This document shows, piece by piece, positions 7,664 to 62,499 of a stretch of DNA of 64,000 nt. The position numbers were made by a program, and so were the translations under genes. How positions within the stretch are numbered: position 1 is the stretch's first letter; each line of letters starts with the position of its first letter. The notes below the pieces were generated by a model. That model searched no databases, was not told the DNA's origin, and was given only the letters and a program-made list of their open reading frames with translations. The DNA comes from Paragordius varius (taxonomy: Eukaryota > Animalia > Nematomorpha), in NCBI GenBank assembly GCA_964247055.1, contig OZ176054.1:6820001-6884000 (forward strand), in the 5' to 3' direction.

Positions 7664-8366
7664 TATTAAAATAAAAATGCGTCTGGCTTACATAAATTAC
7701 ACAATTTCATCACCAGATCTGGTCAGGCAAAACATTCCTGCGTCCATCAAGACAATATAAGAACTTATCCTAAAAAAGAGGGAAAAAGAGTTTACCTTTC
7801 CGCTAAATTATTATATATTGTGAATTCGAATATGTAGTCACTAGTTTAAGCAAAATAGCAGGGAATGGGAATGAGGCAATTAGTTTGCAATTATCAAATT
7901 TCAATTAAATAAATAAAAAATAACATCATTAATATGGATTTTAAATAAACCAATTTTGGGGTGATCATATACCATACAACAATTTATGCTTGATATATAT
8001 AGTCCACAAAAATACTCTGATATGTATATATTTTGATAAAATGTATCAGGGTTCATAGTCTTTTATGTTCTGACTTACGAGTCATTTAAGAAAATACATT
8101 GTAGTGGTAATGAATCCATGAAAAGTCGTAAAATATGAAGCACATTATATAAATATTTTTTTTAAAAAAGCTTTAAAATTAAAATTTTTTGTTTGGTAAA
8201 ATATATAATAAATTATAGATTTTAGAGTTAAATTCTAAAACTCTTAAATTTTTGGCCCCTCTGAAACGTACAATAACATTTAAAATATAATAAAACCAAT
8301 CTTTTCATATAAGTTGCTGGCGAAGATATCTATAATCTCAGAATTCATTGACTTTAGAATTCGGTT

Positions 8367-31781: not shown

Positions 31782-34700
31782 ATGGCTAGTCGTTTAGATA
31801 TCCATTCCTTTTTAACTTCTGCCGCTATAGCTGTTCATACAAACAATACTAACATTAACCATAATGTAAATCACAAAAGTAATCCCAGTAGCAACAACAT
31901 TAATTATCCCAATTCTACCCCGCCGGGGGATACACCAGCACAAAGCAATAGTCAAGATTCTCCAATTTTGGGCCCCAGTTCTGGGGCAGATTTATTGTTG
32001 AGATCCATTAGTCCTTCATACAGTTTGGATGATACCACAGCCGCTGCGGCCTACACTAAATATCATCGGGAAAATAATAGTAGCAGTGATTGCTTACTCA
32101 ATGACGCTGGTGAGGATAATATAGTTGTTGATAGTAAGTCTGGACTTAGTTTTGATGTTCGCAATCACAACAAGGAACCTAATGGCAGTAATCATAACTA
32201 CATAATACATTCTATCACAGATTCCAGCAATCTCTTGGGTACATCAACTACAACAACATCATCATCGAATGATCGAACGCACAAATATTCGACCAACGGT
32301 ATTAGTGGTTCAATCATGACAAAGGATATTGATCTTGGCGATGAGATTAATATGCATCGTTTATTACACAATATTACACATTATAATGCTATTAGTACTT
32401 CTTCTACTTCACCCACAACTAATCTTGACGGTAGTACCCCACCCAAACACAATGGCATAAAGATGGACCCAGATAGTGAAGAATATAATTCTGTTGTTAA
32501 TTATCAACATCAAACTGAACACCTCCTCAATCTAAGCAGTAATGATAATAACATGAATGGTGGAAGTCATCATCATAATAATAGCAGCAGCTTTCTAAAT
32601 GGGTTAACCGGTTATAACTTGTCATTTAATAATCACCAGCATTTAAATCAAGCAGTTAGCAGTAACAACCACAACAATCCGCTGTATAATCACCATCAGC
32701 AGAGCCACCACCATACTTCAAATCTAAGGTTCTTGGAAAGTCCACCCACTAACCTGCTTCTCCTGGGTTGTTCAAGGTCATCGACGATGACCACCACATC
32801 TAACAATGCTAATTATTTGATGAGTATGGGAACGACCCCTCCTACCATTTCATCATCAACACTCGACGTACTTGCTGGCGAAGATGAGGCTTGTCCCGTA
32901 TGTGGTGACAAAGTGTCCGGATACCATTACGGTTTACTTACATGTGAAAGTTGCAAAGGCTTCTTTAAACGAACGGTACAAAACAAAAAGATTTACACGT
33001 GCATAGCTGAGAAATCTTGCGTTATAGATAAGGCTCAACGAAAACGGTGTCCATTTTGTCGTTTCCAAAAGTGTTTGGATGTTGGGATGAAACTTGAAGG
33101 TAACTTTAATATATTGCAATTTTGCTCTTTTTTTTCACTTATTATAACCTTTGATTTGTCTAAATTGAGTTTTATGGCCGTAGACACAATTAAGCAGAGA
33201 TTTTTTTGCTTACATTAAAATCCGAAAAATGCTTAGATAGGCTCATAATTGGTTAATTATCGTGATTGTTATTTATCTTTTTTAATTTGTAAACATAAAG
33301 TCAAAAAGTTGACTCTTATGTAATAATCAAGAAATTTGACGCCCTCAATAACGCTACTTATTTGATAAAACAAAAAGATGGAAAATGAAATGATTATGTG
33401 ACACTAAAAATGACAAAATTAAAATAGAATTTTAATATATTGTACAGTATATAACAGGTATTCTTAACCGAAAACTTTGCAAAAAAAAGTTGGTTTTACA
33501 TTTTTTCAATTTTTTTACATTCTAAAATACCTTTAGTCATTTTTAAATTCATGATATAAAATATTATGGATATAAATAGCTACAAACTAATCAAAAAGAG
33601 CAAAAACTAGTGTTACGTAAAATAACAATTAAACAGTGTATTTTGAAAAAGTATTTTCTATTTTTTGGAACCGCGGTTCTAATGAACACGAATCCGAAAC
33701 AGTTTTTTAGTTTGTTTATTTTCCCAAACGCTTAATGGTTGGTTTCAGTCACTCTATAAAATAACCGTAAATAGGAAAACAGTCAAATCACAATAATTAA
33801 TCTATGTTTCCACTTAAAGTTTAAATATTCTTTCATACTAACACCCAATTTCTGTAGTAACATGATTGGTAATAAAGCTATCACACGGTGTTTTTAGATA
33901 AAGATTAATCTAAAGACACTTTTTGTAAAAATCGAATGTTTAATGCAATTGTTAGTATATTTTTATAGATAAACTCGATTTATGAGCTTTTTTATATAAC
34001 CGGGCGAAATGGTAAAAATATGTTTAATCATCGGACAAATCAAATTGCGCACAAATTAACCATTAATACCAAATATAAGCTAAATATTATTATGAAAAAT
34101 CTCAATAATGCGTATATCAAAGTTTAAAAAGACGGGGATATTTTAGGGTGTTTCGGCATCAAAGTAAAAATTGATTTATTTATATTATGTGCCGTTGAGT
34201 TATTTTGCGGAATTAATTCAGGCATTAGTTTCTTTCAATTAAAAAATTCATTTTATTAAAATAAAATCTATTATTTTAATCGGTGGATACAGACTTAAAA
34301 GCCATTATGGCGCCGGAATCTCCTAATATGTATATTTAAAACACTTTTTCTTCAATTTATATAAATGAATAAAACACATGACATCGTTTATTATCAGTTT
34401 AGCTAGCTAGCATTTCAAGATTTATTACCTCTTTCTCTATTAAGTATATTCTCGCACCATATAATAAATATGACTATGTCCTTTTTTCTGCTATCTATTA
34501 ACCATGACAATGAAAATTATACAAAATCTAACTAAATTATATAACGATATTAATGGACAAAAAGGCCTAAGGCTAAGGTTTTTACAGTTTTTATAATACT
34601 GTCGTCTTTTGATGTGCAATTTTAGCATAAAAAATGCATAACAACATATAAAGTAATCTTTCCTTTGGTCCCTAATGCATTCTTTCTGTTCATCATGAAT

Positions 34701-37700
34701 AAGTAAATAATGGATATATTGTAGTATAGAATGTGTGTGACATAATTTTAACATTGATATCAGATGATCAGCTGGAACTAGGTCTAAAAGCGAACGTACG
34801 TATTTGTAAAATATTCAATACTACAAACACACATTGTGGTTACTATATTATTTATTGGTATAAAACTATAATCATATATATTGCATGAATTGTATGAGCC
34901 AAAAAATCAATAAACATTGTAACTAATAATTTTATTTATTAATTCTTATAACATTTAGCTGGTGGAGTCTGATAAAAAATTAAATTAATATTTTGGTTTT
35001 TTTAGCGTAGAAGGTGACGAATAGTTTTTCTGTTTTATTTTATATAGAATTAAATATTTAAAAGTATTATTATGAAAATATTTTTTTGTAATTTATTATA
35101 CAAATATATATATATATATATATATATAATTTTTCTTAACATAAATTTAATAGCCATATATAGTATTTTTTGAATGTCTGCCAAAAAATGTCTATTAAAA
35201 CCTAACTAGTATAAAACCTATAAATATTTATTTTCGTATTATAATCCAATTTGCATATAAACACAATAATTATATTCCTTCTGGTCCCATTAGTGTCTTC
35301 TTTTATAATATAAAAAAACTTTACACACCCATTTTTTTTGATAGATGAAGAAGATGCTGTAAAAATATTTTTTCTTGAATAATATTGTATTGGAAAAAAT
35401 TTAAGAATATATAATATAGGGTTGTAAAATGCTTATTAATCAAGAATTTAAAAAAATGATAAAAAGCACACAGGAATGTAAATTTGAATGGGCATAAAAT
35501 AGCGGTGAAAATATTTTGAGATTTATATTTTCGAACGACCATTTATATATTAAAATTAAACCATCATTTATTTAATTTTATACTATATCATTATTCAAAA
35601 ACAGCCTACTTGTATTTTCCTTTTTCTTGTTTTATATTAAATTAAAAAGCAGACGAAAAATGATATAATCTATAGTTTCTACTTTTTTCTTATTAATATT
35701 TATTTATTTTGGGTAATCAACCATATTTTTATATTTATTATACATTTTTTGTTTTTACTGTAAAATTAAAGCTGTCAGAGCTGACAGAATGCGTGGAGGC
35801 CGTAACAAATTTGGTCCAATGTATAAGCGTGACCGAGCTCGTAAGATGCAATCATCTCGCACTCGATTGGGATTGAATGGGAGTACCCTCAGTATTAATG
35901 GTACTAATAGTCACTATACGAATAATACGACAAACCATTCTATCCTGAAGAATAACAACAGCAGTAGTCTTTTCACAAGTGGACTTACTTTTACAGCAAC
36001 CGCTTCTTCAGAGTGTCTTTTATCGACAACGTTTAATTCTTCTGTTGTCACTCCACCTCCTCCTCCTATTATATCGCTCAATCATTCATTACGCAGTAAT
36101 AATATAACATCATCGACTACTAGTTTTGTACCATCTATTACGATGAATAATTACAATAATAGTATTATTGGGGGCAATCGCAATTTCATGCATGATTTAT
36201 CTTTGTCGCACAACCATAATAATAATAATAATATCTTTTTATATCACCAAGCCCAACCTCAACAACAACAACAAAATCAAAATGCTCCTTATCCTGAACG
36301 TCAAACTTTAATCACAAGTCTCAATTACAATAAAGCTACCACAACGAAACACCAAATCAACAATGTTGATGTTGATCATATGAATGATGATACGGAGGAA
36401 GATGCGTTTTGTGGCTCCCGCCATTTTTTGGGTCGAATGTCTGAAAATGATACACTTCCTTCCCTATGTTCAAATATAGCAGACCGGGAAAATAGTAGTC
36501 ATTCTTTAACTTCAAATTATCATCAATACTACGCTAATAGCAATGGAAATGGTATTATTCTTGACGAATTTAACACGTCCGATAATATGAAACATGTTGA
36601 TGAACGAAATCGTACCCAGGTTACTCGAAATAAATTTGGTTTGAATGGTGTTGTTGTCCCTGGATATAATAATTCTGCTTCTGACAACACCCTAATGAGT
36701 AAATCAACCCCTAACAAAACTAGTAATATTCCGCTCAATTTATCTCCCACCACTTTTTCTTCAAGCTAGGGTTAGGGGTTACTCGTTCAAAAATGGTCGA
36801 TCTCACTTATAAATGCATTAATTTACAAACTTAACCAATTACAGTCATGTAGACTTTATATTGTTAAAGATTTACTTTTTTTCGTTAATTGGGTATTAAT
36901 ATTTGGTAAAGAATATAAAAACAAGAGCTATATGGTATTACCATATCATATTCTTTAAAAAAGTAAAAGAAGTGTGGGGGAAGGGCGTCGGAAATCTTTA
37001 GTAAAAAATGAAAATCTTAAAATATTGTTATAGGGGAATGGTAATATTTAATCTTTTAGCAAAATTTATATGTTGATTTTTTTTAAAAATTTATTTCGCA
37101 GTACACATATGAAAGAGGATTGACGTGAGAATTAACTAATTAATTTGATGAATATTTTGTATGTTAAAATTTGAGAATATTACAGCAATTTATGTTAACA
37201 TTAAAATATTGTTTTACGTATTTAGATGCGGAATTTTGTGGGTTTTTATTCTTAATAATTTAATAAATAGTAAAATGGGTATTTTAATATTATTTATGAT
37301 TCATAATTAAATTCAACAATTACTATTTTCAACATGATAAATACCTGTATTAATCAAAATTGGTATTATTATTTTAAATAGTTGTTATTAGTAATTAAAA
37401 TACAGGTTATATATTTGTGAAAATTTAATTAGATTATAGATTGGTTTTGTTTTTATGTTTTTCATGGTTAATTTTTATGTGTTTACATTTTAATCAGGTA
37501 AAAATTGCGGTTTTTAAATTTAGTCACATTTAATTTTTTTTGTTTTTTAGGATTTGCATTGCAAATTGTATTTAATTACTACATATTGGAAATTTTAAAA
37601 TACAGGTAAAAATGGCGGTTAATTTCAAATTTATTTATTTTTCATTGGTAATTGTAATTAATTACATATTGTGGACATTTTAATAACTACAGGTAAAAAT

Positions 37701-40700
37701 TGCAGTTTTTAATAAATTTAATAAAAATTTAGTTTTTGTTTTTTAGGATTTGCATTGTTATTTGTAATTAATTTATTTGGTCATTTTAATAAATACAGGT
37801 AAAAATTGCGGTTTATAGCAAATTTCAAATTTTTTTTTGTTTTATATCATTGTTAATTGTAATTAATTACAATTTTAATAAATACAGGTGGAAATGCCAG
37901 TTTTTAAAATTTAACATGTTTTGTGTCATTGTTATTTGTTTTTAATTAATAAATATTTTGGACATTTAAAAAACAGGTGAAATCCCGTTTTTAATAAATT
38001 AGTAAAATTTATTAATTACTATATATTTTTGATACATTGATATATACAGGTAAAAATTACAATCATTTGAATAAATTAGCAAGGTTGAACAAAATATTAA
38101 AAATTTATTAATTTTATTAAAAACCGCAATTTTCACCTGTTTTTTAATGTCGAAAATATTTGATAATTAATAACAAATAACAATGATACAAAAAAAATTA
38201 AATTTGAATTTTGTTATAAACCGCAATTTTTACCTGTATTTATTAAAATGACCAAATAAATTAATTACAAATAACAATGCAAATCCTAAAAAACAAAAAC
38301 TAACTGCAATTTTTACCTGTAGTTATTAAAATGTCCACAATATGTAATTAATTACAATTACCAATGAAAAATAAATAAATTTGAAATTAACCGCCATTTT
38401 ACCTGTATTTTAAAATTTCCAATATGTAGTAATTAAATACAATTTGCAATGCAAATCCTAAAAAACAAAAAAAAATTAAATGTGTCTAAATTTAAAAACC
38501 GCAATTTTTACCTGATTAAAATGTAAACACATAAAAATTAACCATGAAAAACATAAAAACAAAACCAATCTATAATCTAATTAAATTTTCACAAATATAT
38601 AACCTGTATTTTACTAATAACAACTATTTAAAATAATAATACCAATTTTGATTAATACAGGTATTTATCATGTTGAAAATAGTAATTGTTGAATTTAATT
38701 ATGAATCATAAATAATATTAAAATACCCATTTTACTATTTATTAAATTATTAAGAATAAAAACCCACAAAATTCTGCATCTAAATACGTAACAACAATAT
38801 TTTAATGTTAACATAAATTGCTGTAATATTCTCAAAATTAACATACAAAATATTCATCAAATTAATTAGTTAATTCTCACGTCAATCCTCTTTCATATGT
38901 GTACTGCGAAATAAATTTTTAAAAAAAATCAACATATAAATTTTGCTAAAAGATTAACAAAAATATTACCATTCCCCTATAACAATATTTTAAGATTTTC
39001 ATTTTTTACTAAAGATTTCCGACGCCCTTCCCCCACACTTCTTTTACTTTTTTAAAGAATATGATATGGTAATACCATATAGCTCTTGTTTTTATATTCT
39101 TTACCAAATATTAATACCCAATTAACGAAAAAAAGTAAATCTTTAACAATATAAAGTCTACATGACTGTAACTTATAAATTCAGCTCAGGAAGCTTATTT
39201 TTGAAAAGCGATCACAATTATGAATATTAATAACAGGTCACTTAAAATCGACAACTACTCGATTTAACATTTTAACCAAAAATGTGGGGAAATGCATTTT
39301 CTTTTTAAGTCATTGTGGAAAGCCTAATTGTTTGGAAATACTTATTTAGCAGAGTTTTTTAATTTGATTGTTGAAAAGTGATAGTTAATTTTTAAAATTA
39401 CATATATCAACACAGGTAATATAATTTGATAGTTTCAACAATGTATAAATGTTTGTTTATATAGATTTTTTGGATATAACAAAATGCATTTATCATTTTA
39501 CAGCAATTAATATTACCTATGCTGATTAATCAACTATCACTTTTCAACAATCAAATTAAAAAACTCTGCTAAATAAGTATTTCCAACACAATTAGGCTTT
39601 CAACTATGACTTAAAAACAAAATGAATTTTCCCACATTTTTGGTTAAAATGTTAAATCGAGTAGTTGTCGATTTTAAGTGACCTGTTATTAATATTCTTG
39701 TGATCGCTTTTCAAAAATAAGCTTCCATTTACTTTTTAAAAGTTGCAACATATAATTGAGCTGAATTTATAAGTTAATTGGTTAAGTTTATAAATTAATG
39801 AATTTATAATTGAGATCGACCATTTTTTGAACGAGTCACCCCTACCTTTTAATACCAAACTTAGATAAATGATACGTCCAAAAAACAGAGTGGACTTTTT
39901 TAACATAAAATTTTTTATAAATAACATTTTTTTACACTATAGCCAAATATATATGGTGTCAACTATTTTTTGAAATATTTTGTTATGTTGTTTATTCTTT
40001 AATTTTCGATTAATTTAACATTAATTTTGGCTATTTTTTATTTGATGCCTGATAGGTTCCTTTTCTTCACCACTTTCGACGAATGCACCCCACTCCTCAT
40101 TACTCCTTGCTAATCAAACTATGAACCACAACTCTAATGCTAATATAAATAATAATAACACAAGCAGTTCACTGTTTGATGGGCCCGGTGGTTTACCCAT
40201 GTTAGATGTTTCCGATATCTTTTTGAGTGGTTTAGGTGGTCTCCCTATGCTTGGCGACGATGATGAAGATATCGATCACAATGGTGTACATGATCTTGAT
40301 TGTGAACCCACGAATGATGTGAGATTGAAACCAGCTTCAGCCTCCTCTTTAACCTTTAAATGTTCATCATCTTCTTCAAATCCTTTATACTTTGTTGGTG
40401 GTAATAATGAATACAGCCCTTCAAATGAACATGTGAATGTCGTTGAACAAAAATTCCTTCAAAACAATAACCATAATAACAACAATGCTGCTTTTAATGG
40501 TAATAATTCTACTACTAGTCAATCACTTAGTTGTGACATTTTGGATATGAGTATGGAGAGGAGACCTCTTCTTGAAAGCAACTCAACTATGCACATTACT
40601 AATCATATGGGGAATGGAGTTTTGTTAAATGGAAACAACACCTATGAAAATGGCGCAAAAGTTAATGGGGGCCCTTCATCCAACAACAGTATTAATCATC

Positions 40701-41912
40701 ATCAACATCAGAGTAATTTGGGTTACGATCAATCTCAATTCATTAAACAGCTCGTGAGTGCAAACTCAATCGATGACCAATTGTGGAAGGATAATTTGTT
40801 TGGTTTCATACAGAGTCAAACGTACAATCAATGTGAAGTGGAAAACTTTTCCCTTATTTGTAAAGTGTTGGATCACAGTTTGTTTACCTTGGTTGATTGG
40901 GCACGCCATAGCTATTTTTTCAAGGACTTGGAGGTTAGTTGGATTTTATTTTTGTGATTAACACGAAGCTGTAAAAAGTAAAATGGGGACACATTTAATG
41001 TGTATAAAAGTATTTTTGTGCGAAAATAAAATCGCACAAGCATATTTTTCCCTATCTCAATTATTAAACATCAGTTTATTCCAATTCATGTGTGTAAATA
41101 TTGCTTAGATCAGGTTAAATAAAGTGAATTTTTGACGGAAGGGGGTAAAAAATGGGCTTAATTACATGAATAACGTCGAAAAGAGATTTGACTATTTGAT
41201 GACTTTTATTTTCTTTTTCAGGTTAATGATCAAATGAAACTCCTTCAACATTCTTGGAGTGAATTCCTTATACTGGATCACACATATCATCGCATTTACA
41301 ATGACCTGCCCGAAGAAATGATATTACCAAATGGACAAAAATTTAATTTGCTACATGTTTGTTTGCTTGGGAATTCTAGCATGGCACCTCACTTGCATCA
41401 ATTTATGGATAAATTGGTCAATTCCCTTTCCATGGACAAATATGAATACATTTCTCTCAAATTTTTCGTTCTACTTAATCCAAGTAAGCGTCGTCATTAT
41501 TTTGGGTTAAGGAAGCGGGGGTTTATTTAATAATATTTTTAGAAATGTGAGTATATAGGTTAATGTTTAAACACAAAATTGTTTAATTTAGACCATAGAT
41601 TTGTAGATTATTTTTGTGTTTTTATTCGCTTGGCGGAAGGGATTTTGTTTAATTGTTTTTAAACTACTATTTTTATGGTTATATTTAAAGTGGATTTTTT
41701 TATTTAAATTACCTATTTATAACGCAATTAACTAAAATATTTTTGTAGAATAGAATGAGCCATTTGCTTCAAGTTTATTTAAACAAAGTTTAATTACATC
41801 TGATTTTTTATTATAACAGAAAAAAAACGTGGCTCGCTCGCTATTATTTTTATATTTTTTGATTAGCCTTGAATTGGTATAAAACTAACTACTAACTAAC
41901 TACTCAATCTAG

Positions 41913-41945
<33 letters not shown>

Positions 41946-42767
41946 TGCTATATAAAAAAACTACTACAGCTTAAAAATATAATTATATATTATATATTTC
42001 TCAAAAAAACTGTATAATGAATGAGTGTATTAATAGCAGTTAAAACTATATAGCGCGACGTTAATATACATTACTCATAAATTGATTTGATTTATCGTTT
42101 ATACTTTATTGCGTAAAAAAGGCTAAAATCTTTGTACACTTTATACAATTTTTTAAATAAATCATGATTTTTACCAATTTTACTAGATTATATTATATTT
42201 TTATTATATAAATATTGGTGTTTGCAAACGATTTTTCTTGAAACTTAAAATTAAAAATTTTATTCGATTCAAATATTTTATGATAGAATTAGAAACAAAA
42301 ATTTATGGTAAAATACATTGTAGTCATAAAATTGATAAAACATAAATATTGGACGAATGATTTTCATCCACATTTTCTATTTAATAACTGGCCCTTGTTT
42401 TAACTTTATATGCAATCTTTTATTATAATAAACTAAATCCTTGAATAAAATATTTAAACCTTTAAACAATAGTAGTCTCCCCTTAAAAATTTCTTTATTA
42501 TAATTTTTAGCTGTGAGAGGTCTTCAAAATCGCAAGTTGGTGGAAGAGGCCCAAGATAAAATTCATTCATCACTTATGGTGTATTCGTCTCTTAATTACC
42601 CAGTCATTAAGGATAAATTTAGTCGAATCATGATATGTTTGAGTGAAGAACTACGTCTCATAAGCCTAAAGGGCGAAGAATTTTTACATTACAAACAAAG
42701 CAATGGTTGTTTACCGCCACATACACTCTTGGTTGAAATGTTGAATGCTAAGAAACGCCGTTTGTGA
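31782..42767 (+). CDS. ftz-f1: Nuclear receptor NR5A / FTZ-F1 (about 1221 aa)
   Basis: Predicted exons 31782-33099, 35772-36722 (alternative donor 36698), 40056-40933, 41222-41483, 42511-42767. C4 zinc fingers [35 protein letters not shown]1 box [32 protein letters not shown]...[14 protein letters not shown]-2 LLVEML. Confidence 0.95.
36770..39846. mobile_element. Outer palindromic (foldback) MITE of about 750 bp, split by a nested insertion
   Basis: 36770-36841 joined to 39171-39390 is the reverse complement of about 39528-39846. No TSD found. Confidence 0.75.
36842..39168. mobile_element. Giant foldback element (Tc1/mariner-like ends, TA TSD)
   Basis: TA|CAGTCATGTAGAC...GTCTACATGACTG|TA. 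Near-identical arms of about 1.1 kb; inner arm parts are ~90-105 bp subrepeats carrying CAGGTAAAAATTGCGG. Confidence 0.85.
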
Positions 42768-43898: not shown

Positions 43899-45572
43899 CA
43901 AGGCTTCTTAAACTATGGGTCGCGGGTGATAAAATTAAAATTTAACAAAAAATATTAATCTATATATTTATAAAAATGGAAAATGCGGCTTTGTAATCTG
44001 TTTCCAAACCAGTGGACCCATTCGAATCCAAATGTTGAAAAAATATAATCATTGATGAATGCCCCGACAATAGCTTCGTCTTTTTTTGAATTAGACCCCC
44101 AGTTCGGGCCCACCCCTTGTAAAAAACCGGTTTTTTTGAAAAATTGTGTCTTTGAGACAATTTTCCTGAAATCGTGTTAAATCATTCGATTTCAAATATT
44201 TTTTTTACTTATTTTCATTCTCAATTGCGCCGAACATAGTCGGCTCGCCTTTTCAATTTCGGCCCTCTTTTTACCCCCTCCACCCGTAAAATGCCATTTT
44301 TTTCAAATTTTCACAAAAATAATTTTTTGAATCTATTTTTCGCCCAAAGTATGAGACCCTAAAAATTCAATAAGGATTCCAGATATTCCCTGTTAAAAGG
44401 CAAATATTTTAGTCGACGTGGCTTTTGGGTAGGGGGCTACCTGCCAACAACTGGGCCACCATATTGATACAGCGTGACTTTGGAGGCAAATTTTAGAAAG
44501 CTTATCAGGCCATATAAGTTCAATAAGGGCTTGAAATATTACCTTAAAAAGGCAAAAATTTGATTGGAGCGGTTTTATTAAATTACCCCTTAATTAGGCC
44601 CTTGCCCTGAAAAATGCGCCACCATAGAATGACTTTTTGGTTTTGGGGCACCACGAGAGCATATGGAATCAGTCATGATTCCAGGTAATAACCGAATTAA
44701 GGGAAAAAAATCGAGCGTTTTTTTGTTTCGCTCCTGGTTAGAGGCTACCCGCGTAAAACTGCGTCACCATCTCGATACAGCATGCCTTTGGAGCCAAATT
44801 TCAGAAAACCTATGAGTCTAATAGGAACAATGGATTCCATGATAATTCCAGATAATCCCCGTATGAAGGAAAAAATTTTAACCAGCGCTTTTTTATACCT
44901 GCCCTGGGTTAGGAGCTACCCTCCAAAAACTGCGCCATACTATATAGAAATTGCTTTGTTTGGAGCTAATTTACAGAAAATTATGAAGCCATATGAGCTC
45001 ATTAAAAGCTTGAAATATTATCCGTAACTAGGTAAAAAAATCAGGCGTTTTTTTATTATCCGTTAATTTGGGGCCTTTATGCCCTAAAAATACGCCCTCA
45101 TATACGATAATTTAGTGTTGAGGTATTTTTTTCGAAAACCCATGATACGATGGTATCAAAGATAATTCCAAATATTTGCCCTATAAAGGCAAAGACTTTA
45201 ACTCAGCGCTTTTTCCATATAGGTATATGGGTAGGGGTCTAACGGTTTAAAACTGAGACGCCATACAAAATTGGCGTGGTTTTGGAGCTAATTTTCAAAA
45301 AACTTAAGAACCAATACGAGTTCAGTTAAACACATTTCTGGGGAATTTGTATATTGTCATTCTTTCCTTTCCCATTAAAATATCTTTAAATTTACTATGA
45401 ATCAGAAGATGTTATAGATATGTAAATTTATTTTTTTCAATCGCTTAAAACCAAAATAATCCTAAAAAATATTATCAAACAAAATTTCTAGGCGTTTTTC
45501 AAATTGTTGGGTTCGTTAAGAGACTCGCTATCATAAATGGGGTCGGGAATTACAAAAGTTTAAGAAGCCCTG
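43899..45572. mobile_element. hAT (Charlie-like) MITE carrying a nested Helitron
   Basis: 16-bp TIRs CAAGGCTTCTTAAACT / AGTTTAAGAAGCCCTG (one mismatch) and a perfect 8-bp TSD GTATAAAT at 43891-43898 and 45573-45580. Confidence 0.9.
43959..45324 (+). mobile_element. Non-autonomous Helitron copy 3, 3'-truncated
   Basis: A|TCTATATATTTATAAAAATGG start, colinear with copy 1 to about GAGTTCA at 45324. Hairpin and CTAG are absent. Confidence 0.8.
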
Positions 45573-48085: not shown

Positions 48086-49324
48086 CTACGTCTGATATTG
48101 CACGAATCCGCTAGTGTTTTCAATAAATCGAATATAAAATCGAATCATATCCATATAACTCTTAACACGAATTCGTTCATTTATTCCATGAATGCCTTTG
48201 ATATCCGTCATGGGCATTACAACCGGTGAAAATCTATTAAGGTGTTATTAATATATAATTAATTTATAAGTGTATTAATTAGGAGTTTTTAATTATAAGA
48301 TTTTAATCCACACTCAAATATATCAAATGTTCTAAAAAATAACTTTTAGATAATAACATAAATAGCTCTAAAAGTTTTATAAAAAAATTTGGGAGCTTTG
48401 GAATGTATTAACTTAATATAATATTCTCGATATTAATATAAAAAAATTTTGGCTGTTTAACTCCATATTGTAAAATATCATAGGCAAAAAGCCGATCATA
48501 ATAATATCTCTTAAAACTTTTAAATAATTCCAAATGTATAATGTACATCCTTTACCCTATCCAAAAAATTTGGTCTAGCTAACAAAACGTATAAACTGAC
48601 GCCAAAAATTAGCGCACTACAAAAAAATTTTATATCAACTTATTCAAATGTGTTTACTATAAAAACAAATTTCGGATTATGTTATGTTAGGAAATTTTAT
48701 TGACAAAGTTAATATATTTAACAACAAAAAATATTTCAACTTCCTGAAACTTAAAATATTCTTTAATGAAAGCAGTTTAATTCATTTGATCAAATCAAAT
48801 GCTATCTAATAGGTGAGTAGGTAATGGCGAGGGTTTGTAACGTAAACGATGTGGAAATCGTTGTATTACATAAAAATAAAATATAATTTATAGGTTCTTA
48901 AATTTTCGTCATAGGCAACATCAGGAGTAAAAAATATATATACAACACAATGAAATTTAATTAAAAAATGAACAAAATTTCCCATTTAAGTAGTATCAAT
49001 TATGATTTTGTTCAATTTTTAATCTAATTTTTATTGTGTTGTATATATATATATATATAGATATATAGATATTATGATGCCTATAGCGAAAATTTGAGAG
49101 CGTCTCTGTTATAGATACCTAATAGTATAAATGGGGTCGAGTTAGGCCTATATGTTTTAAAAGTAATTTTATGTATATGGGTATTTGACATGTAAAATAA
49201 AAGTGGATAACTTTTCTACATTATCTTACCTGTATATGTCGAGGGCCAAGTTTATAAAATGTTTAGAATCTGTTCCGCCAGGAAGAATAACTAAAAACAA
49301 AAAATATGTATATTGATTATATTA

Positions 49325-49368
<44 letters not shown>

Positions 49369-52300
49369 CCGAAGGGCCACATTCGTAAAATATGTGTGGC
49401 ATTCACGAATAATTTATTAGAAAAGTATGTTTAAAAAATCAACTTAATTAAAATTCTCGTGAGCCAAAGAAATATTTTGAAGGGCCGCATCCTGATGTAC
49501 AAAATGTTACTAGATAAATATTTACCATATTACAATTTAAAAAATTATAAAATTTAGTAAATCCCCGATCAAAAGCCAATTATAATAAAATCTAACTGAT
49601 TATTATTATCTATTTTAACACCATTTATTTAGTAGAACACACAATGTAAATTTGACTATTTTTTTCAAAAATATATGGACATATATACTTGGAACAACGG
49701 GCGTTTGCTCAAACATATCTCCAATCGTTTTCCGTAAATAATAATATCCCGTATAAAGAAGGGGGATTTCATCATCAGTATGAATGGCAACAGTTTGATC
49801 CGATTTTATAGTAAAAGTATCACAGCAATTAGAAATGGGTATGTGTGGGACAGTTGATTCCGCCTCCAAATGTACTCGTTTATCACCAATGACATTCTCA
49901 CATTCTGTCATAATCTAGCAAAATTTAAAAAAGGAGATGATTAAAAAATAAGTCATAAATGGGCGTCAGAAAAAAAGATAGTTAACAATTTATATAGAGT
50001 TACCAATTTTTTTATAAATATTACAAATAAATATATTGTTTTAAGTTCCATTACTAATTTAATATATTTTTAGGTTTTTAATTTACATTCGACAAATATT
50101 ACTAGTAATAGCCAAAAATTCAGGTTTGATATAAATTCAATTATTTACAAATTTAAATAATTTCAATTATTAAAATTTTCTTTCACTGCCAGTTAGATAA
50201 ATGGAGCTTATTAAAAGACGCATCTAATATGGTTGTCTAAGGATAAATATTCAGTTAAGATTGATTGCTATAAAAATAAAACTCCAAAAATTATAGAAAA
50301 ACAAAAAGAAATTTACATTGGGATAGTCTGTATTTAATGCGAGGACTTTTATTTAGTCAATCTAATTAATTAATAATTAATTTATGTAAATACAATGTTT
50401 GTTTGTAGTATGGGTATAAGTGTAAATAACTGCATTGACAAATGCAGCCAGGTCAGTCCAATATTAAAAAATAAAAAAAATGTTGATTCAACGAAAATTG
50501 GGAAATATTATGATTTTCTAAATTGGCCTTTAGTTATAAATGATTAAAATTTGCAATGTATCCTGCGAGGCCATGTATTTTATTACATCAATTAGTATGA
50601 TGATTTCAATTTATAAAAACCAAAAATAATAAGTTTCAGCCAAATACCTCAAAAGAGTCTATACGCATTTAAAAATATTAAACAATAATATTTTGGCGAG
50701 ATACACAAGATTAAAGTTTTTTATCATTTTAATTCTACCTCAGAAATAGTTTGAGTTGGATAGACCCTAATGTTAACGGTGGCCTGAGCCTCACTTGGGA
50801 CAATGTTATCTTTGAGACCTCCTTTGATCATGGTTATACAAGCTACTGTCCCAAATAAACTTGACACCAAGGAATTATATTTACATGCAAATCTATAATA
50901 AATATATAAAATTTTGAAAAATTTATATATCTTTCGTATATACCAACTAAAATTAAAAATTAATTTAGTTTTTTTGTAAAAATTACATGTCAACAACTAG
51001 TTGTGTCGTACTGATGATCAGTGTTAACAAGCAAGAAAATAGACTATGATTACTATTGAGAGGAGAATCAACGTATCAGTTATATTTTCTGTTTAAATAA
51101 CAGTTATTAATTTAAAGTTTATCCTTACATCACGGATTTGATGATAGAATTTTTATTTCCCCATTATGCCACATATACACAACCAAATATATTAATAGTT
51201 ATTTTTTATTTCTTTTGTTATTTAACACTTTTAAGATAGAAGCTTATTTACTTTTTTTTCGAGCAATATAACTTGACAATATTAATCACAAATTAAATAT
51301 TAATTAATTTATATCTTTTATCTTTCCATTTATTTAATCATGTAATTTATTAAATAAAAAATATTTCCTTGCCTATTATCAGAGACTATAGTAACCCCTT
51401 AATATATAATTATCCCTTCGAAAACTTTTATGTATTTCAATAACATAATACACAATATAACTGGTATATAAAAAAACAATATATTCCCAAAAAGATAAAA
51501 ACAAATTTATCTAAAAATAAATACTTGATTATAAATCCGGAACAAATATCACAATTAGCCAAAAAGATTGGCAAAAGAAGTGCTTTAACACGCTCAAAAA
51601 TACGTTGAAAGAAAGTACAATTAGTTATTTTCGATTTCGTACCACCAATATAGGGTATAAAGGAATCAAAAATGTGAGAAAGTGAAAACCCCCAACGATG
51701 TGGTCTAGCAAAAGTATGGGCATCGAGTCTGGCCAATGCAGACGACAAAATGGCGATCGCATTCGTTGATGAGGAGAGTGGAAAAATCTAACATATAATA
51801 ATATTATTTAAACACTTGAAAACAAACTATGTTCACATATCCTTTGACACCGATTGGGATGTATGAAACAGATACGTTATAAAATAAGGCTGGAGAAATC
51901 ATTTTCAAAATTTGCACACATATGTATATAACATTGGTGCATTTAAAAATAAAAAGGTATCTGTCTAAAATGACTTCATTATTTTACATTATATAGTATA
52001 ACTTAAAGCAAAAATTTATAGAACATTTTATGAATGCTAAATAAAATATTGCTAATTACTATTTTCTGTATTTTGCCTAAAAATATCCTATCAAATATAA
52101 AATACTTTATAATGATAAAATATTATTAAATGAAAATAAAAATTTAGATTATATGTAGCAAGCATGTGTTAACACCTAGATACAACATGTTTATTTCAGT
52201 CCTTCGATTCAAATTGGGGTCGTTAGGCCCAGGGTTTTTATTTAAAATTAAATATTTTAAACAATATGTAATAAATTTATACCACTGCAAAAGTTTGCAT

Positions 52301-55300
52301 TTATATAGGAATAATGAACAGAAATATACCAAAAAATTTATTTAAAAATATTTGATATTGTTTATTCAGAAATAAAACCAGGTAAAAATTTAGCCAACAT
52401 GAGTGTGCATGAGCTAAATATAAAAATAATGCAAAACCATTTTTTCAGTTTATATCAATGTTAAAAGGGATATTAATAAAAATATAAACTTAATAGCCTT
52501 AGAATCAAATGAACATGATATTTTGCAAAAATGTTGTGAAATAAAAATGGCGTCCAAGTAGTTTGATACGGAACTTTTTTTCCAAAACTATAATCTATAT
52601 GATAATTTGGCTCATTATAATTTTTATTAGGATAAAAGCATACATTTAAATTGGAACCGTTTCCTTCAGCAGTTTTTTAAATATCAATCTAAATATTGTC
52701 CTGGGTATTTAGATGTCCCAATTTAAATCAAAGTGTTAATTACAGAGCGCATTTTAATGGTTGCTTATTTCACTCTATAGTATGGCAATTTGCCACATAC
52801 ATAGTAGTGTATGGAAAAAAACATAATGATGAATAAACAATTATCCTTTCCTTACACTCCTGTGTTGCAAATTGCCATACTATAGAGTGAAATAAGCAAC
52901 CATTAAAATGCATACTGTAAAAATTAAGCTAAATAAAAATTTGGCAGGAATCCTTTCATAAAAAAAATTTTGTATAAAATTAGACAGAATAAGAAAAGTA
53001 CAAATACTAAAGAGTAAACTCGGTCACATGTTTAACTTTTAATAAGATGTTCTTTTATAAATAGAAAATTATATGATTTACCATTGATATAGTTATTATT
53101 AAATAATTAAATTTTTCATATACAAATTAACGCCAATGATATTTTAAACCACAATGTTTGATTAATAAATTATATATCATTAAATATTCTTAAACTTAAT
53201 GTAGATCGATCGCAGAAAATTGCCAAACGGTATAAAAAGATAATATAATCTTAAAATTATTTTAGAAAAACCTTATTAGCGTTTAATGCTTTTTGTGGTT
53301 GCGACGTTGATAGGCTAGAATGGCCTGGTTCAGTTTTTACCGTCATTTTTAACATACAGCTAATTTTTTCTGATATTCCGATTCTATAAAGTGCGTATAA
53401 GGACATTAATCTAAAGCTGTAAATTTTTTTATGATACAAATGATCCATAAAAAATTTGAAAACTTTTAACAACAAATTGAGTATATTAAAACTTTAAATG
53501 CTAATATTTCCATCAGAAAGATAAAACCATTATTGATTTGACATTTATATATAATTAAAGGATAAGGCTAAAATCTTATTCATGGATATAAAAATTATGG
53601 TAATATATATATAAGGTGAATTACGTAAAAAATATTAATCTAAACTTATTTTGTAAAAAACCCCAAGTATTTTAGAAATTCCTTGCTTATAATAACCCTT
53701 TTTTATATTTTGTTAAAAAATGTTAAATCTTATTTTATAATATTTAATGTTTTTAGACGAATTAAAAATAATTGAATATTGCGTTTAATGTTTTTAATTT
53801 GCTACGATATATCAAGAATATCCGCAAACTAGGTAGTGTGAAACGATATAAAAATTAAAAGGCTTGTATTTTAATAGATCCTTTTAAAGAAGTGCATGTT
53901 AGTTAGCATGAAGCCACTGTTAAATAAATATTATGGGATTACTAACAGTAAAAATTAACAAAAATTATTTATAAAATGGAAAACTTATAATGTATAAGTT
54001 AATCTATGTTAAAAAAATATTAACAATTTTACGTTTTTTTCATATTTTTTAATTTAAAGTGTAAATAATAAATTTCATGATATATGAAAATAAATCATAC
54101 ACTCCAACTCTAAGTTGTGGCATAGATTTGAAAACGTCGCAATATATACTCGTCCCTTCATCTACAATAAAGGCCAATGGTTTTTTCCATATATTTTCTT
54201 CGGTAATTTCTAAATATTCGTATTGTTATCCATTATTTAAAATGGCAGAAAAAATAGTGAAATATATACATTTTAGCCTATAACTTAGCTTTTATAAACA
54301 TTTTCAACTCCAAGCCATTTTAAATAATTATAAATTGTAAACTAAAAAAATATTTAATAATATTTACCGTGGTCATTTGGAATTTTATATTGCGTGTGTA
54401 AAAATTTTGAAATGTTTAAAGCACCATCTAAACCATTAACCTAAATACAATATTGTACATATATATATATATATATAAACGCATTTTTTGTGGCGTACAA
54501 AATATCTTGCAATAAAAAATTGCAAAAAAAGGTTGTGACAATGTGTTTGCTTAAATGCATAACGATTAATTATATAAAATAATTTTTTAATCAATTATGC
54601 CATTTGCATTTCAAATTTCTCAAACATTGGTTGCGTATCATAATTTATTGCATTTGTATATATTATCAATTGCTAATTATATATTTTGCTCTCTAAATTT
54701 AAGATTTTGTTGGAAATAATTTTTTCCGATTCAAAGGCATTTTACGTTTTACTGTTTTTAAATTTCAATATTTAGATCAGGCGTCAATCTGATAAAAATA
54801 AATTTTGGTAAGCTTTTAAAAAAATGGCTATTAATAAACTGTTTATAAGTATATTAGTTACAAATGATAGGAAGATGTATGATACAATAGATGATTAAAA
54901 TAAAAATGTCACAGGACCATGTCAAATATTAAAGGAGTAACTTGAAATATTTTGACATAAGGTGCAAACGATATCATGGTTTTAAAATTTAAATGCTACC
55001 TCTTCGTCATGACCAAAAGCTAAGAAAAATGATCTATATTTAGGTCTTAGACCATGTTCTATCATATATTCTAGTGTGGCAAAAAGTGAACACATAATGT
55101 GTTTGGCATCCAACGTTCCACGTCCATAAATATATGCGATTTCATCTATGTCATCTTTAAGATCTAAGGCAGTTTAATTATGAAATATGAAAATATATAT
55201 AAATTTTTTTGATATAAAAACAGGAATAACTGTACGTCATAATCAAAGACAATATTTAATCGTGTCTCCGAAACTGTACAGTTTTTATTCCTGTTTTTAT

Positions 55301-56151
55301 CCGGACATCCTACGAAAGAATTTATATTCATAATATTTATACATCGTGGTAATCTGAGGCGATTTTTTTACGTCACACATGCCCTTGTGTATAAAACTAA
55401 TGATTTTACAGATCATTAGAAAACTGGCCTTTGCTGTTAGCGCATTTTCATGCCCCAGCCAACACCGCAGGGGATAGGATCCGGACACGTAAGTATATAT
55501 ATCATATGTCGAAAATAGATTAGATATTCTAAAAAATCGTTTAAAGATTGGTTTAATATCGGTTTTACATATTTTTGGGGAAAAAACGTTTCCGGTTTTG
55601 GTTTAAAGATTTTTGCAAAATAAATTGTTTTCGGTTCTGGTTCCATCGTTTTTTTTTTGAGGAATGATTTTGCCAGTTATATTATTTAAAATTTAGAGAT
55701 TGCCTAATCATAACCGAAAAATATTAAATCACCGTATTATTATTATAAATTTAAATATAATAATTTTATAAATGCTAAATTTTTTAAAAAACCATAAAAA
55801 TAAAAAACGATATTTTTTAAATTAGTTAAAATCAGCAGTTTAAGTTCATAGCGGTTTACTCTGCAATTTTTAGAAAATTATTAATATTGCCTAAATATTT
55901 GAATGCATTTAATGCAAAAACCTCCATCATTTGATGATTCTTGGACCGTTTTCTTGACATTAAAAATTTTGGAAGCATATGGATTGCATTTCCATTCCTT
56001 AGAATTATTTTTGTAAGTTAAATTATCGTTTGGCAAATTATTGTTGTTATTTTTAATGCTTTTATCATTTTGGTCTTGAAAGGGTGCGGGGACGACGTCA
56101 GAATGTGCAATAAACATATACGGCTTATATTTCATATCGTTTATAAAATCT

Positions 56152-56192
<41 letters not shown>

Positions 56193-56614
56193 CTAAATTT
56201 AAAAAACCATGATCCGGATTCCGTTCTTCAAAATCTGAAACACATTTGAAAAGTAAACTGTAATTATTTATAGTATGAAATTGGATCCATTGTGTATTAA
56301 AAAGTAAAGGGTGATCTGACGTTAATAAATAAAAGCAAACTTTGTTTCACAACCTCAATAAAATGAGCCAATTCATCAATATTATATTTATGTTGCGAAT
56401 GTGATTCGGTTTTAATATTTATAATATCCATAAAATTTTTTAAACATTGCTCTTCATTCAGATCTGTAAAATTATAATTAAACTAACCTATTGGTTTTAA
56501 GAGAGTCTTGCTATTGGTAATTATCGAAGATATTTTTTTGTTAGCTTTAAAGATTAGGTAAATAATTGGTTGGAGTATCAATAAAAAGATTGCACTAATA
56601 ATATTGCCAATCAT
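48086..56614 (-). CDS. PM20D1: M20A-family peptidase, PM20D1/carboxypeptidase-S-like (about 631 aa, N-terminal signal or anchor)
   Basis: 13 phase-consistent GT-AG exons: 56614-56488, 56463-56341, 56315-56208, 56149-55922, 55163-55000, 54440-54368, 54209-54101, 53383-53272, 51787-51525, 50892-50739, 49914-49689, 49290-49230, 48233-48086. Motifs AHSDVVP, IYGRGTLDAK, AFGHDEE, IVDEG, GHSS, GGLKDNIVP, GGTDSKH and IHGINERI are present. Orthology to PM20D1 is inferred. Confidence 0.9.
48897..49098. repeat. Imperfect inverted repeat, part of a dispersed family also at about 1825-1945
   Basis: AAATTTTCGTCATAGGC...TACAACACAATGAAA mirrored by TTTTATTGTGTTGTA...GCCTATAGCGAAAATTT. Segment 48795-48925 resembles 1825-1945. 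Confidence 0.5.
52173..52735 (+). mobile_element. TTAA-family MITE, copy E (PM20D1 intron)
   Basis: TTAA|CACCTAGATACAAC...AATCAAAGTG|TTAA, 563 bp, homologous to the copies at 18-21 kb. Confidence 0.75.
52743..52917. mobile_element. 175-bp Tc1/mariner-like MITE
   Basis: TA|CAG...CTG|TA with perfect 44-bp inverted arms (52750-52793 and 52867-52910). Confidence 0.75.
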
Positions 56615-56692: not shown

Positions 56693-59231
56693 ATGAACAA
56701 TAATAAGGTTAATATCCCTGTCATACCAAATTTTAAGTTGATTTTCATTTAATTATTATAGTTTTAATAATTTTCACAAAAATTCAACCTACAATGAGGC
56801 TCTTGATAACTTTTCTAAGCAAAAGTTGGGGGATTTTAATCATAATCATTCTGTACACAATATCAAAAAACTTATTGATAAATATTTTAAAAATCAAAAA
56901 GAAAATGGTGTCAAAATAATTTATCTACATAAAATTGCTAAAGTTATATTTAATTTACTGCAAATATTTGTCCCCCTTGATGCATGGGACTATATTAAAC
57001 CTTTTCGATTGCGTAAAATAATTTTTTATCATATTAAATACATATATTCCGATAAAAACTTTATTATACCAAATTATATTTGGAATAAATGCCGAGATTA
57101 TAATATGCAACGAAATTTATATGCCCCTTTTTGGCAGCATTTTTGGATCTGGATCATTTGTGATTACATACCCAATTTTATTCTGAAAAAATATTTTTTC
57201 ACAATGTTTGAACAACGCTTCGTGCCAAATAACTGTAAAACCGATTTTAAACTTAATTACAGCACATATTTTTTCCGTAAAAGAAGCAATAATTCCTCAA
57301 TTTTAGCCCATAATTCATTTTTGATTCATCAAAAACGGATAAAAATGTTGCCGGATAGGCAGAAACTTCACAAAATTCAAAATTATATTCTTCATCGACA
57401 AATACTTTTGCCCAAATATTCGTTTTGTAAAGCGCGCAGCCTAGTAAAAATAACTTCCTATCGAACTATTTTAAAACATATCCGCACTTCAATCAATTCT
57501 CCGCCTCGGTTATCACACATTCCTGGGACCTCTCACAATAAAATTTCATTAAAATGCCTTTTGGCCTTATTAAAATACATGTTTACAGATTATTTAAATT
57601 ACAGACAAAATACTTTTTACATATTTAAAAAATCTCTAGTAAAGTATGTCACATCTTATCGCGACTTTCATAAACATTGGTTTCCATTTATATCCAATCT
57701 CACCTCGTCATGTGATTTAAGCGAGAAATCCAATAATGAAAAATGTTCTTCAAACATACCATTGTATATGTTTAAATGTGACATGGAGCAATGTTTTGAT
57801 AACATTAATCAAACAATCTTGTTTGACTTGTTGAACAAAGTTTTAGTTGAACCTTGGTCTGGTTTAACGATTTATTGTGTCCCCTACACCCTTAAAAGAT
57901 ATATCAATACCTCCTCAATTATTTCTTCTTTAAACAATCACAAAAAATCTGTGGTGCGGCGACGACTTCAAAAATACTTTTTCTTCCCTTCAAGTTTACT
58001 CTCTGTGTGGCAGGCTGAATTAATAAATACCGTTAAAAGAAATAACTCTATGACCACAAATAATTATGAAATTGATCTGCATGCCAATTCAAAACGAAAA
58101 ATGGTACCTTTTCCCATTGATTGGATGAATGTTAAAAGTATGTTGCATACTTATATTTTTTGTTCAATAATGCAAATACAAGCACATGCGCAATCAAAAA
58201 TTTTGAAATGTCGTCTGCCGTTTCCAACAACACTCAAAAGTTATGACCTTTACCAATTGAAGTGTGGGATACCCCAAGGGGGTGTTTTATCAAGCTTTCT
58301 TTGTGATTTTTATTACACTATGATAGATTATACCATAATTGATCATATCAATGAGTATCTATTATTAATGTCCGAAACATATAAAAATAATGCTACCGAA
58401 AATGCAACACAATTACTTTATTGTCGACATATGGATGATTATTTGTGTTTTAGTCCGGATAAACATATTTGTCTTTGCGTACTCAATATCTTTTTACGGG
58501 CAAGCGAAACTCTTGGATTCAAGGTAAAACCTACAAAATTACAACATAATTTATTTCCCAGTTCAAAGATGAATACAGAGTCCGAAATTTTGTCAACCTC
58601 CTCTTATCTTACATGGTGTGGAATTTCTATCATGACCCAATACCCATACGCTATTACAAGCTCCCGAGCTAGAAAAATGATTTTTACTGACATTTTTAAA
58701 TTTGATTATGCATATACAATGTCTGAGAATGGCGGCGAAATCCAATGCAAAAGTAAAACGGAACACTTTGAAAAATATTTTAACAGTTTGTCTAATCAAA
58801 TCACGCGTTACCTTCAAGGTAGCCTTAATGAAGCAATGTTATTTACCATAGAGACACAACATCAATCATTGTCTGATTCAAAACCAAATATTTTACTTGA
58901 TTTAAATTTAGCCTCCATATATGATATATTTTCCATTTGTGCCCTTAAATTTTGTAATAATTTTTATGATAGAGCTATGAAGCAAAAAATAAGTATATAC
59001 CTTAATCTCATAATGCAAAAACTTGTACAAATTGTATGCAAACGTATAGCTAATAGTTGGGAAATTTGTCATGGTTTATATATGTCGACTGATAAATATA
59101 TCAGCTATATAACTTTAATATGTGTTTGGGCTTTCGCATCCGTATACAAAGCAAAAAAATGTCCGTTACGCCGTACAGTTATGAATGATCTCAATACCCA
59201 AATATCACATTTAAAAAAATGTTTAGCATAG
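56693..59231 (+). CDS. TERT: Telomerase reverse transcriptase (about 837 aa)
   Basis: Exons 56693-56736 and 56762-59231 (25-nt intron). QFP-like VIFNLLQIFVPLDAW, T-motif-like KKYFFTMFE...YFFRK, motif 1 LLPK, motif A YMFKCDMEQCFDNI, B' GIPQGGVLSSFLCDFYY, C RHMDDYL, D GFKVKPTK, E TWCG. Confidence 0.93.
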
Positions 59232-59706: not shown

Positions 59707-60476
59707 CCATTTACACTTCAAGAGTGTCCTTGAACAATTCAAGTTGGTCCTTGAACAATTCAAGTTGGTCCTTGAACAGTTCAAGTTGGTCCTTGAACAA
59801 TTCAAGTTGGTCCTTAAACAATTCAAGTTGGTCCTTGAACAATTCAAGTTGGTCCTTCAAATTTATAAATTTTGATTTAACCAAAATTTTTGCATTTATT
59901 TATTTATTTTATTATTTATTTACCTAATTTTCTTTATTTATTATATATTTATTCTTTTAAAAATAAATTTTTTTATTGAAAAACACTTTTTTTGTTTCAA
60001 ACTATTTTTTTCAATCAACAAAATTATTGACTTTTAAATGTTTTTAATAAAAAATTTTAATTAATAACCCAGAAAACTTATATAATTTTTCATTTCATGT
60101 TAAAATCTTATAAATATCCAAATTTATTTAAAGAAATTAATAAAGATATACGGTTTTTCAAAGATTAAAAGTTGATATCGATTTAAAATTTATGTTAAAT
60201 AATAGAAAATGGTTAAAAACAATAAAATAGACGAATTATTTTCGATTTGATTGATAAAAGTTAAAAATAAAGCAAAAAAGTTAAAGGACCAACTTGAATT
60301 GTTCAAGGACCAACTTGAATTGTTCAAGGACCAACTTGAACTGTTCAAGGACCAACTTGAACTGTTCAAGGACCAACTTGAATTGTTCAAGGACCAACTT
60401 GAATTGTTCAAGGACCAACTTGAATTGTTCAAGGACCAACTTGAATTGTTCAAGGACACTCTTGAAGTGTAAATGG
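59707..60476. mobile_element. TIR element whose arms contain tandem 21-bp arrays
   Basis: TATATA|CCATTTACACTTCAAGAGTGT then 6 x CCTTGAACAATTCAAGTTGGT (59728-59853). The mirror arm has 8 units (about 60288-60455) and ends ACACTCTTGAAGTGTAAATGG|TATATA. Confidence 0.85.
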
Positions 60477-62417: not shown

Positions 62418-62499
62418 CGACGAGGATGGGATTCGAACCCACGCGGGGAAACCCCAATGGATTAGCAGTCCATCGCCTTAACCACTCGGCCACCTCGTC
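62418..62499 (-). tRNA. tRNA-Ser(GCT)
   Basis: GACGAGGTGGCCGAGTGGTTAAGGCGATGGACTGCTAATCCATTGGGGTTTCCCCGCGTGGGTTCGAATCCCATCCTCGTCG: cloverleaf with long variable arm, A and B boxes, and a downstream T-run terminator. Confidence 0.97.

Follow-up and report, generated by a model that had tools for sequence, protein, structure and literature searches.

We describe here the telomerase reverse transcriptase (TERT) gene of the horsehair worm Paragordius varius (Nematomorpha), which lies at positions 56,693 to 59,231 of the plus strand in a stretch of 64,000 nucleotides (GenBank assembly GCA_964247055.1, contig OZ176054.1, positions 6,820,001 to 6,884,000), hereafter the window. The gene is this genome's genuine TERT. 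We consider it fairly probable that it encodes a compact enzyme without a TEN domain, with a trimmed TRBD, a complete reverse transcriptase (RT) domain and thumb, and a full-length insertion in fingers domain (IFD) whose middle is most likely a diverged TRAP. This would be the first described TERT of its phylum, and we found no report on the phylum's telomerase.

Identity of the gene

All searches and folds were run with the translation of 56763-59228 (+), 822 aa, which leaves out the first 15 residues of the predicted product; the joined protein of 837 aa served for numbering only and was never a search or fold query. Residue numbers of the D340 type refer to this exon-2 translation, and aa 355 and aa 520 to the joined protein. 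In a 39-TERT alignment, the query retains all invariant columns (D340, C344, D346, G502, Q505, G506, S510, R555, D558, D559 and K592) and also the nearly invariant P217, K218, R225 and W618-C619-G620; RT motifs 1, 2, A, B', C, D and E are present, together with the catalytic Asp triad. The catalytic motif set is intact, and the TERT is probably functional. Searched exhaustively with HMMER, 1.84 billion representatives yielded 52 matches (best E 5e-9), every one of which carries TERT RT motifs. Nine of the 52 were scanned with Pfam, which saw Telomerase_RBD in seven, TERT_C in one and RVT_1 alone in one, and all nine were called TERT-type. The ESM Atlas neighbours of the query are likewise TERT clusters (0.97), the first two of them arthropod.

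The predicted structure leads to the same family. The best Foldseek match of the full-length AlphaFold2 model (predicted local distance difference test, pLDDT, 65; predicted template modelling score, pTM, 0.68) is human TERT, at E 1e-18 (1.2e-18), with Tribolium TERT weaker (1.8e-9). The model superposes on the TERTs of Candida, human, yeast, Tribolium and Tetrahymena with Z 20-26 over 450-590 residues, as against just Z 13-16 on R2, LINE-1 and group II RTs. The protein is nonetheless extremely divergent, with 16-20% identity to any compared TERT and no close relative in the libraries searched. Word-index protein searches, whether with the whole open reading frame (ORF), with its RT region or with the 39-TERT alignment as query, were empty or brought up one fungal TERT, and none retrieved a nematode, arthropod or horsehair-worm TERT. 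Against solved structures, phmmer found no match with the whole ORF; with the RT fragment it reached Candida TERT (1e-4), aligning the motif A stretch to Candida motif A. NCBIfam gave a weak group II RT match only.

That Pfam matches the exon-2 translation to RVT_1 alone (1e-9), with no match to Telomerase_RBD or TERT_C, would be in keeping with some other TERT-like reverse transcriptase, for instance from a Penelope-like element, as would a gene nearly without introns; the Telomerase_RBD miss also counts against our own reading. We nevertheless hold such an origin to be hardly credible. The protein has the features specific to TERT, namely the T motif, the Cys-x-Asp of motif A, the WCG of motif E, the IFD and the TRBD and C-terminal extension (CTE) folds. 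An endonuclease domain is absent, as is any flanking repeat structure typical of elements, and no additional domain follows the thumb. The TERT motifs of all significant matches, the TERT-type calls for the nine that were scanned and the gap in Z between TERT structures and retroelement RTs speak against it as well.

N-terminus and TRBD

An earlier note on this DNA had claimed that too little room is left at the N-terminus for TEN, that the T motif is divergent, that 165 aa separate the motif A Asp from the motif B' Gln, and that the same distance is about 120 aa in human TERT. The present analysis bore out all four. The superpositions begin at model residues 53-58, equivalent to human 456, Tetrahymena 371, Candida 248 and Tribolium 48, and thus only after ~67 residues of the predicted protein, compared with 455 in human TERT and 47 in Tribolium; a TEN of ~180-200 aa therefore cannot fit. 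From residue 53 onward the same whole-chain superpositions (Z 20-26) take in the TRBD fold, on human TERT from 456, on Candida from 248 and on Tribolium from 48, and at the other end they extend through the CTE to the chain ends (human TERT 1108, Candida 869). In the CP region of the TRBD the first 57 residues have pLDDT below 50; the QFP-like helix aligns, and Pfam Telomerase_RBD remains unmatched. The T motif, YFFTMFE, retains its Glu and has Phe in place of Thr, and YFFTMFE ... YFFRKRS aligns with the consensus FYxTE ... YYRK. Its hairpin counts 18 residues, not 8, ahead of the YFFRK strand, or ~10 aa extra.

A TEN and linker profile of 23 TEN-bearing TERTs found no match in the six frames of the window (best E 1.9, <5 bits). 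As a positive control, the same profile finds the TEN ORF at another locus, L001, with E 1.5e-30, ~1.3 kb upstream of the called TERT. The lineage of that control is represented in the profile and the query is far more divergent (16-20% identity), so the blank scan has low power and is weak evidence, which weighs against our reading. So does what the control locus itself teaches: its database TERT, P0015, looked TEN-less but had its TEN in an upstream ORF, and a truncated gene call of this kind is an easy artefact. By the local gene model TEN is absent from the Paragordius polypeptide, and we infer that this absence is a true one; that the modelled 5' end is correct, and TEN hence lost, appears likely to us. 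TEN loss by itself is not novel, nor is it unusual in this region of the animal phylogeny. Nematomorpha is the sister phylum of Nematoda, and on this basis one would expect the N-terminus to be short and the T motif to be unusual. Truncated N-termini without TEN or the GQ motif have been reported in protostome TERTs, including those of many arthropods and nematodes (PMC5405514; PMC11892584; PMC1361356).

Two database proteins were considered as precedents for a TEN-less TERT with a long IFD and rejected: P0015 (871 aa, collinear with the query and with a long IFD) for the upstream TEN ORF (E 1.5e-30), and P0017, which has Telomerase_RBD and a further ORF upstream. We note separately that the P0015 call is split at L001 (Logan contig SRR24390597_24075) into 3458-4354, 4405-5352 and 5618-8233, TEN and linker lying upstream in two ORFs, each with a gene call of its own (E 1.5e-30 and 0.0015), in a compact eukaryote genome.

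The insertion in fingers domain

The distance from the motif A Asp (57780) to the motif B' Gln (58275), 165 aa, is long, yet inside the known range. It is 121 aa in human TERT (D712 to Q833), 125 in Candida tropicalis TERT, about 155 in Tetrahymena TERT and 154-177 in several database TERTs, with 122 residues typical of the TERTs in the library match set. A leave-one-out IFD profile matches the query with E 8.6e-18, from profile position 2 to 143, and 141 of the 143 match columns are occupied. A further 45 residues stand in insert columns, with four insertions of about 10, 5, 12 and 15 aa; the IFD-A and IFD-C helices are retained, as is the near-invariant His. Human, Candida and Tetrahymena TERT are each matched by the same profile over its full length. 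Tribolium TERT is not matched at E <= 1e-3, in agreement with the published lack of TRAP in Tribolium and Spodoptera (PMC8096264; PMC11892584; PMC12920920).

Structure prediction suggests, with moderate confidence, that the middle of this IFD has a TRAP-like fold. The full-length and IFD-only AlphaFold2 models contain the same strands at 376-386 and 397-407, forming a long hairpin, followed by a helix at 415-425 and a strand at 429-433 (pLDDT ~55-78). The structure nearest to the IFD-only model is human TERT 715-843 (Z 7.5, 119 residues aligned, root-mean-square deviation 6.6), and after it come yeast Est2 and the Candida and Tetrahymena TERTs. Queried with only the TRAP part, the ESM Atlas returned nothing meaningful, and a fold search of it with the IFD model was uninformative.

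Gene model and neighbourhood

The ORF listing of the window has the TERT frame on the plus strand, opening at 56742 and closing with the stop codon 59229-59231; an open frame of 2.5 kb at ~28% G+C is far above chance expectation. There is no in-frame ATG before codon 94 of this long frame. The ATG at 56693 stands in a different frame and is the sole nearby start that can be joined to it, by removal of the 25-nt GT...AG segment 56737-56761, which yields the product of 837 aa; the ATGs at 56659 and 56664, also upstream, run into stops in ~10 codons. Start codon and micro-intron are thus a putative gene model, drawn from the DNA (Table 1). A 24-nt GT-AG micro-intron of comparable size is found in the neighbouring PM20D1-like gene (56464-56487, -). 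The 5' splice site GTTGAT is no strong consensus, which tells against the model. Hidden in-frame micro-introns that would lengthen the IFD artificially were considered and rejected, since the TERT ORF holds only two candidates (57581-57604 and 58954-58974) and both fall outside the IFD. The first of these, a 24-nt in-frame GT...AG segment of the plus strand (GTTTACAG...ATTACAG), resembles a micro-intron but falls between motifs 2 and A, within a helix predicted with confidence, and is probably coding.

Table 1. Parts of the Paragordius varius TERT gene and its upstream neighbour, in positions of the window
Feature	Position	Strand	Basis or remark
Proposed TERT exon 1 (predicted)	56693..56736	+	ATG plus 14 codons and two bases of the next; only joinable ATG
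Putative micro-intron, 25 nt, GTTGAT...TTATAG	56737..56761	+	Required to connect exon 1 with the long frame
Main TERT exon, 822 codons and stop	56762..59231	+	TRBD, RT with IFD, C-terminal extension
Compact TRBD core: QFP-like helix (HKIAKVIFNLLQIFVPLDAW) and further helices up to the T motif	56912..57191	+	39-TERT alignment, superposition
Divergent T motif YFFTMFE, then lengthened hairpin	57192..57212	+	Alignment
RT motif 1 (LLPK)	57405..57416	+	P217, K218, R225 columns; motif 2 Arg a few residues on
RT motif A (KCDMEQCFD), catalytic Asp at 57780 (aa 355)	57774..57800	+	D340, C344, D346 invariant
IFD, 164 residues separating motif A Asp and motif B' Gln	57783..58274	+	Profile match
TRAP-like segment, central 93 aa of the IFD (residues 364-456)	57852..58130	+	Predicted structure
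RT motif B' (GIPQG), Gln at 58275 (aa 520)	58266..58280	+	G502, Q505, G506 invariant
RT motif C (HMDD), catalytic Asp pair	58428..58439	+	R555, D558, D559 invariant
RT motif E (WCG), TERT hallmark	58614..58622	+	W618, C619, G620 nearly invariant
C-terminal extension (thumb), all-helical, ~180 aa	58680..59228	+	Model helices 665-821
PM20D1-like M20 peptidase gene	48086..56614	-	ORFs with M20-type segments, e.g. MFIAHSDVVPAP and FLAFGHDEE; family read by eye

The PM20D1-like gene stands head to head with TERT, at 78 nt from ATG to ATG. Its first exon (56483-56614, -) is signal-anchor-like, and the micro-intron mentioned above (GTTAGT...TTACAG) comes directly after it. Farther upstream, an NR5A/FTZ-F1-like nuclear receptor gene at 31770-42764 (+) was recognised by eye from a zinc-finger DNA-binding domain, a segment like the Ftz-F1 box and ligand-binding-domain exons, and it includes very long low-complexity stretches rich in Asn, Ser and His. 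Between the receptor and peptidase genes, 44633-45024 (+) holds open segments (60 and 108 aa) that overlap and contain an internal repeat (RGYPRKTASPSRY / RSYPPKTAPYY), and looks like repeated or transposon-derived DNA. On the other side, 0.5-1.2 kb past the TERT stop, there are two arrays of 21-bp tandem repeats, at 59726-59857 (6.3 copies) and 60280-60457 (8.5 copies), with 96-98% matches; their units are mutual reverse complements, which makes the arrays a large inverted pair with about 420 bp between them. A tRNA gene at 62418-62499 (-; Rfam RF00005, 66 bits) is the sole Rfam match in the window.

Discussion

We suggest that the Paragordius enzyme would begin with a short, Tribolium-like N-terminus of ~67 residues, followed by a trimmed TRBD with a divergent T motif, and that its TRBD-RT-CTE ring would bind the telomerase RNA and copy its template. 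The middle of the IFD would be a diverged TRAP of hairpin, helix and strand, enlarged by four lineage-specific insertions. The TRAP-like hairpin would project beside the ring and could help to hold the template-flanking RNA and the DNA-RNA duplex, acting alone or against some other partner, and not against a covalently attached TEN.

The two halves of this proposal, the TRAP and the missing TEN, meet with different alternatives. The IFD middle may not be a TRAP at all, and could be a lineage-specific insert, fast-evolving or partly disordered, between the conserved IFD-A and IFD-C helices, in which case the protein would be a minimal TERT of the Tribolium type with extra loops. We regard this as the less likely reading, although a number of results lean that way and so weigh against our own. 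In a Smith-Waterman comparison with 42 TRAP segments the 93-aa middle scored z = 1.3, and 20 of 200 shuffles did equally well or better, where four of five control TERTs gave z 6-17; a TRAP-only leave-one-out profile does not match the query; pLDDT falls below 50 at residues 368-371, 388-394 and 435-450; and the language-model search with the middle alone, as noted above, came back with nothing meaningful. AlphaFold2 was guided here by aligned TERTs that bear TRAP, from which the predicted topology may derive, the pLDDT of the fold (55-78) is moderate, and a structural Z of at most 7.5 for the IFD is modest. On the other hand, with 141 of the 143 canonical columns occupied, the canonical length is present on top of the insertions, the hairpin, helix and strand recur in two separate models, and the structures that rank highest as neighbours of the IFD-only model are, without exception, IFD-TRAP regions of TERTs. 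The middle segment is, moreover, not of low complexity and is rich in aromatic and beta-branched residues, and failure in sequence tests is what one would expect of a surface element in so divergent a protein; the fifth control, the divergent long-IFD TERT P0016, also reached only z 1.9. The earlier note had proposed to examine whether the IFD is predicted to fold as a TRAP, and the answer is divided: a hairpin-helix-strand is predicted and TERT TRAP regions lie nearest to it, but the sequence similarity of the middle is not significant.

As for TEN, the gene may be longer than we have modelled it, with TEN exons upstream, in or beyond the antisense PM20D1-like gene, spliced for example via the AG at 56643; the product would then be a normal four-domain TERT with TEN and TRAP together. 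The 5' end of TERT is, after all, a prediction from DNA, the frame of ATG 56693 stays open back to about 56641, P0015 sets the example of a TEN ORF about 1.3 kb upstream of a TERT that looked TEN-less, and the presence of TEN would explain a retained TRAP most easily. We still judge it improbable. On the plus strand, the open segments of 42.8-56.7 kb do not resemble TEN and are short and AT-rich, and the scan with the TEN/linker profile, for what its power is worth, is blank on both strands of the window; AG 56643 is preceded by no pyrimidine tract; a gene on the opposite strand fills the upstream 8.5 kb and has its ATG 78 nt away; the N-terminus extends as far as that of Tribolium TERT, which is TEN-less and has been crystallised; and truncated N-termini are reported as general in protostome TERTs (PMC5405514). 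Hidden upstream exons, one of the options of the earlier note, thus find no positive evidence and are disfavoured by the close neighbour and the blank scan. A split telomerase, in which TEN or a functional substitute from a separate gene would dock in trans on the retained TRAP, we hold to be more doubtful still. Human TEN expressed separately does complement a TEN-deleted TERT and bind the IFD (PMC9958494), in insects, accessory proteins have been proposed to make up for the lack of TEN and TRAP (PMC11892584), and a TRAP-like element without a covalent partner invites one in trans. There is, however, no candidate for such a TEN, and TEN-like coding was not found in the 64-kb window. In the TEN-truncated Candida TERT, furthermore, TRAP also contacts the CTE and the T motif (PMC8096264), and TRAP may therefore be kept for reasons independent of TEN. 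Neither a telomere repeat nor a known telomerase RNA was found in the window.

In the telomerase structures of human and Tetrahymena, TEN joins with TRAP in a single composite unit, which is credited with repeat-addition processivity and telomere recruitment. The TEN-less enzymes studied so far, those of Tribolium and Spodoptera, are without TRAP too (PMC11892584; PMC12920920; PMC8096264). Since both elements are missing there, TEN and TRAP have never been seen apart in nature. The co-occurrence of the two, which the earlier note had cited as reported, can be verified for these insects, and it rests on these two insects only. Its suggestion of a new TEN-less architecture fares similarly: TEN loss has already been published for protostomes, and what is potentially new is its combination with an IFD of TRAP length, which the profile match and the predicted fold make plausible. 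The part that may be new, relative to the two insect enzymes behind the published pairing, is therefore a TEN-less TERT with a TRAP-length and probably TRAP-like IFD. If the gene model is right and the IFD middle is a TRAP, TEN and TRAP would be separated here, and the enzyme would offer a natural test of TRAP without a covalent TEN. We would go further only tentatively, to the possibility of a natural telomerase that lacks TEN and has a working TRAP, intermediate between the four-domain and the minimal insect TERTs, in which TRAP would either hold the template RNA and the DNA duplex independently of TEN or serve as the dock for a separately encoded TEN-like partner. If, on the contrary, upstream TEN exons exist, or if relatives share the layout, our contribution would come down to annotating a TERT that is ordinary, if very divergent.

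Comparison with known telomerases

Among the enzymes that have been characterised, those of Tribolium castaneum (PDB 3DU5/3KYL) and Spodoptera frugiperda, also Ecdysozoa, come closest in plan, being TEN-less and built as a TRBD-RT-CTE ring, as here. The Tribolium superposition places model residue 58 on residue 48 (Z 20.3, 454 residues aligned), an equal N-terminal extent. The insect enzymes, however, are without the TRAP part of the IFD (PMC11892584; PMC12920920; PMC8096264), where the Paragordius protein has 165 aa and fills the canonical IFD profile. C. elegans TRT-1 and other nematode TERTs resemble the query in being compact, in having a shortened N-terminus and in their unusual T motif, which lacks conserved residues (PMC1361356; PMC5405514). 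They differ from it in that TRT-1, of 540 aa, has lost most of the C-terminal extension (PMC1361356), whereas the query, at 837 aa, has a full thumb of ~180 aa, and in that nematode TERT genes have 9-14 introns (PMC5405514) against the single micro-intron of our model.

Human TERT (PDB 7QXA, 7TRD, 9SHZ) has all RT motifs in common with the query (VIA Z 24, 572 residues, human 456-1108), at an identity of ~14-18%, but its 455 residues ahead of the equivalent of model residue 53 comprise TEN, the linker and the first part of the TRBD, compared with the ~67 found here, and its distance from motif A to motif B' is 121 aa as opposed to 165. In the length of the IFD, Tetrahymena thermophila TERT (PDB 6D6V, 7LMA) is the closer parallel, although its identity to the query is ~14%: the 143-position profile spans 174 of its residues (610-783), and it is in this enzyme, whose TEN pairs with TRAP, that TRAP has been structurally defined.

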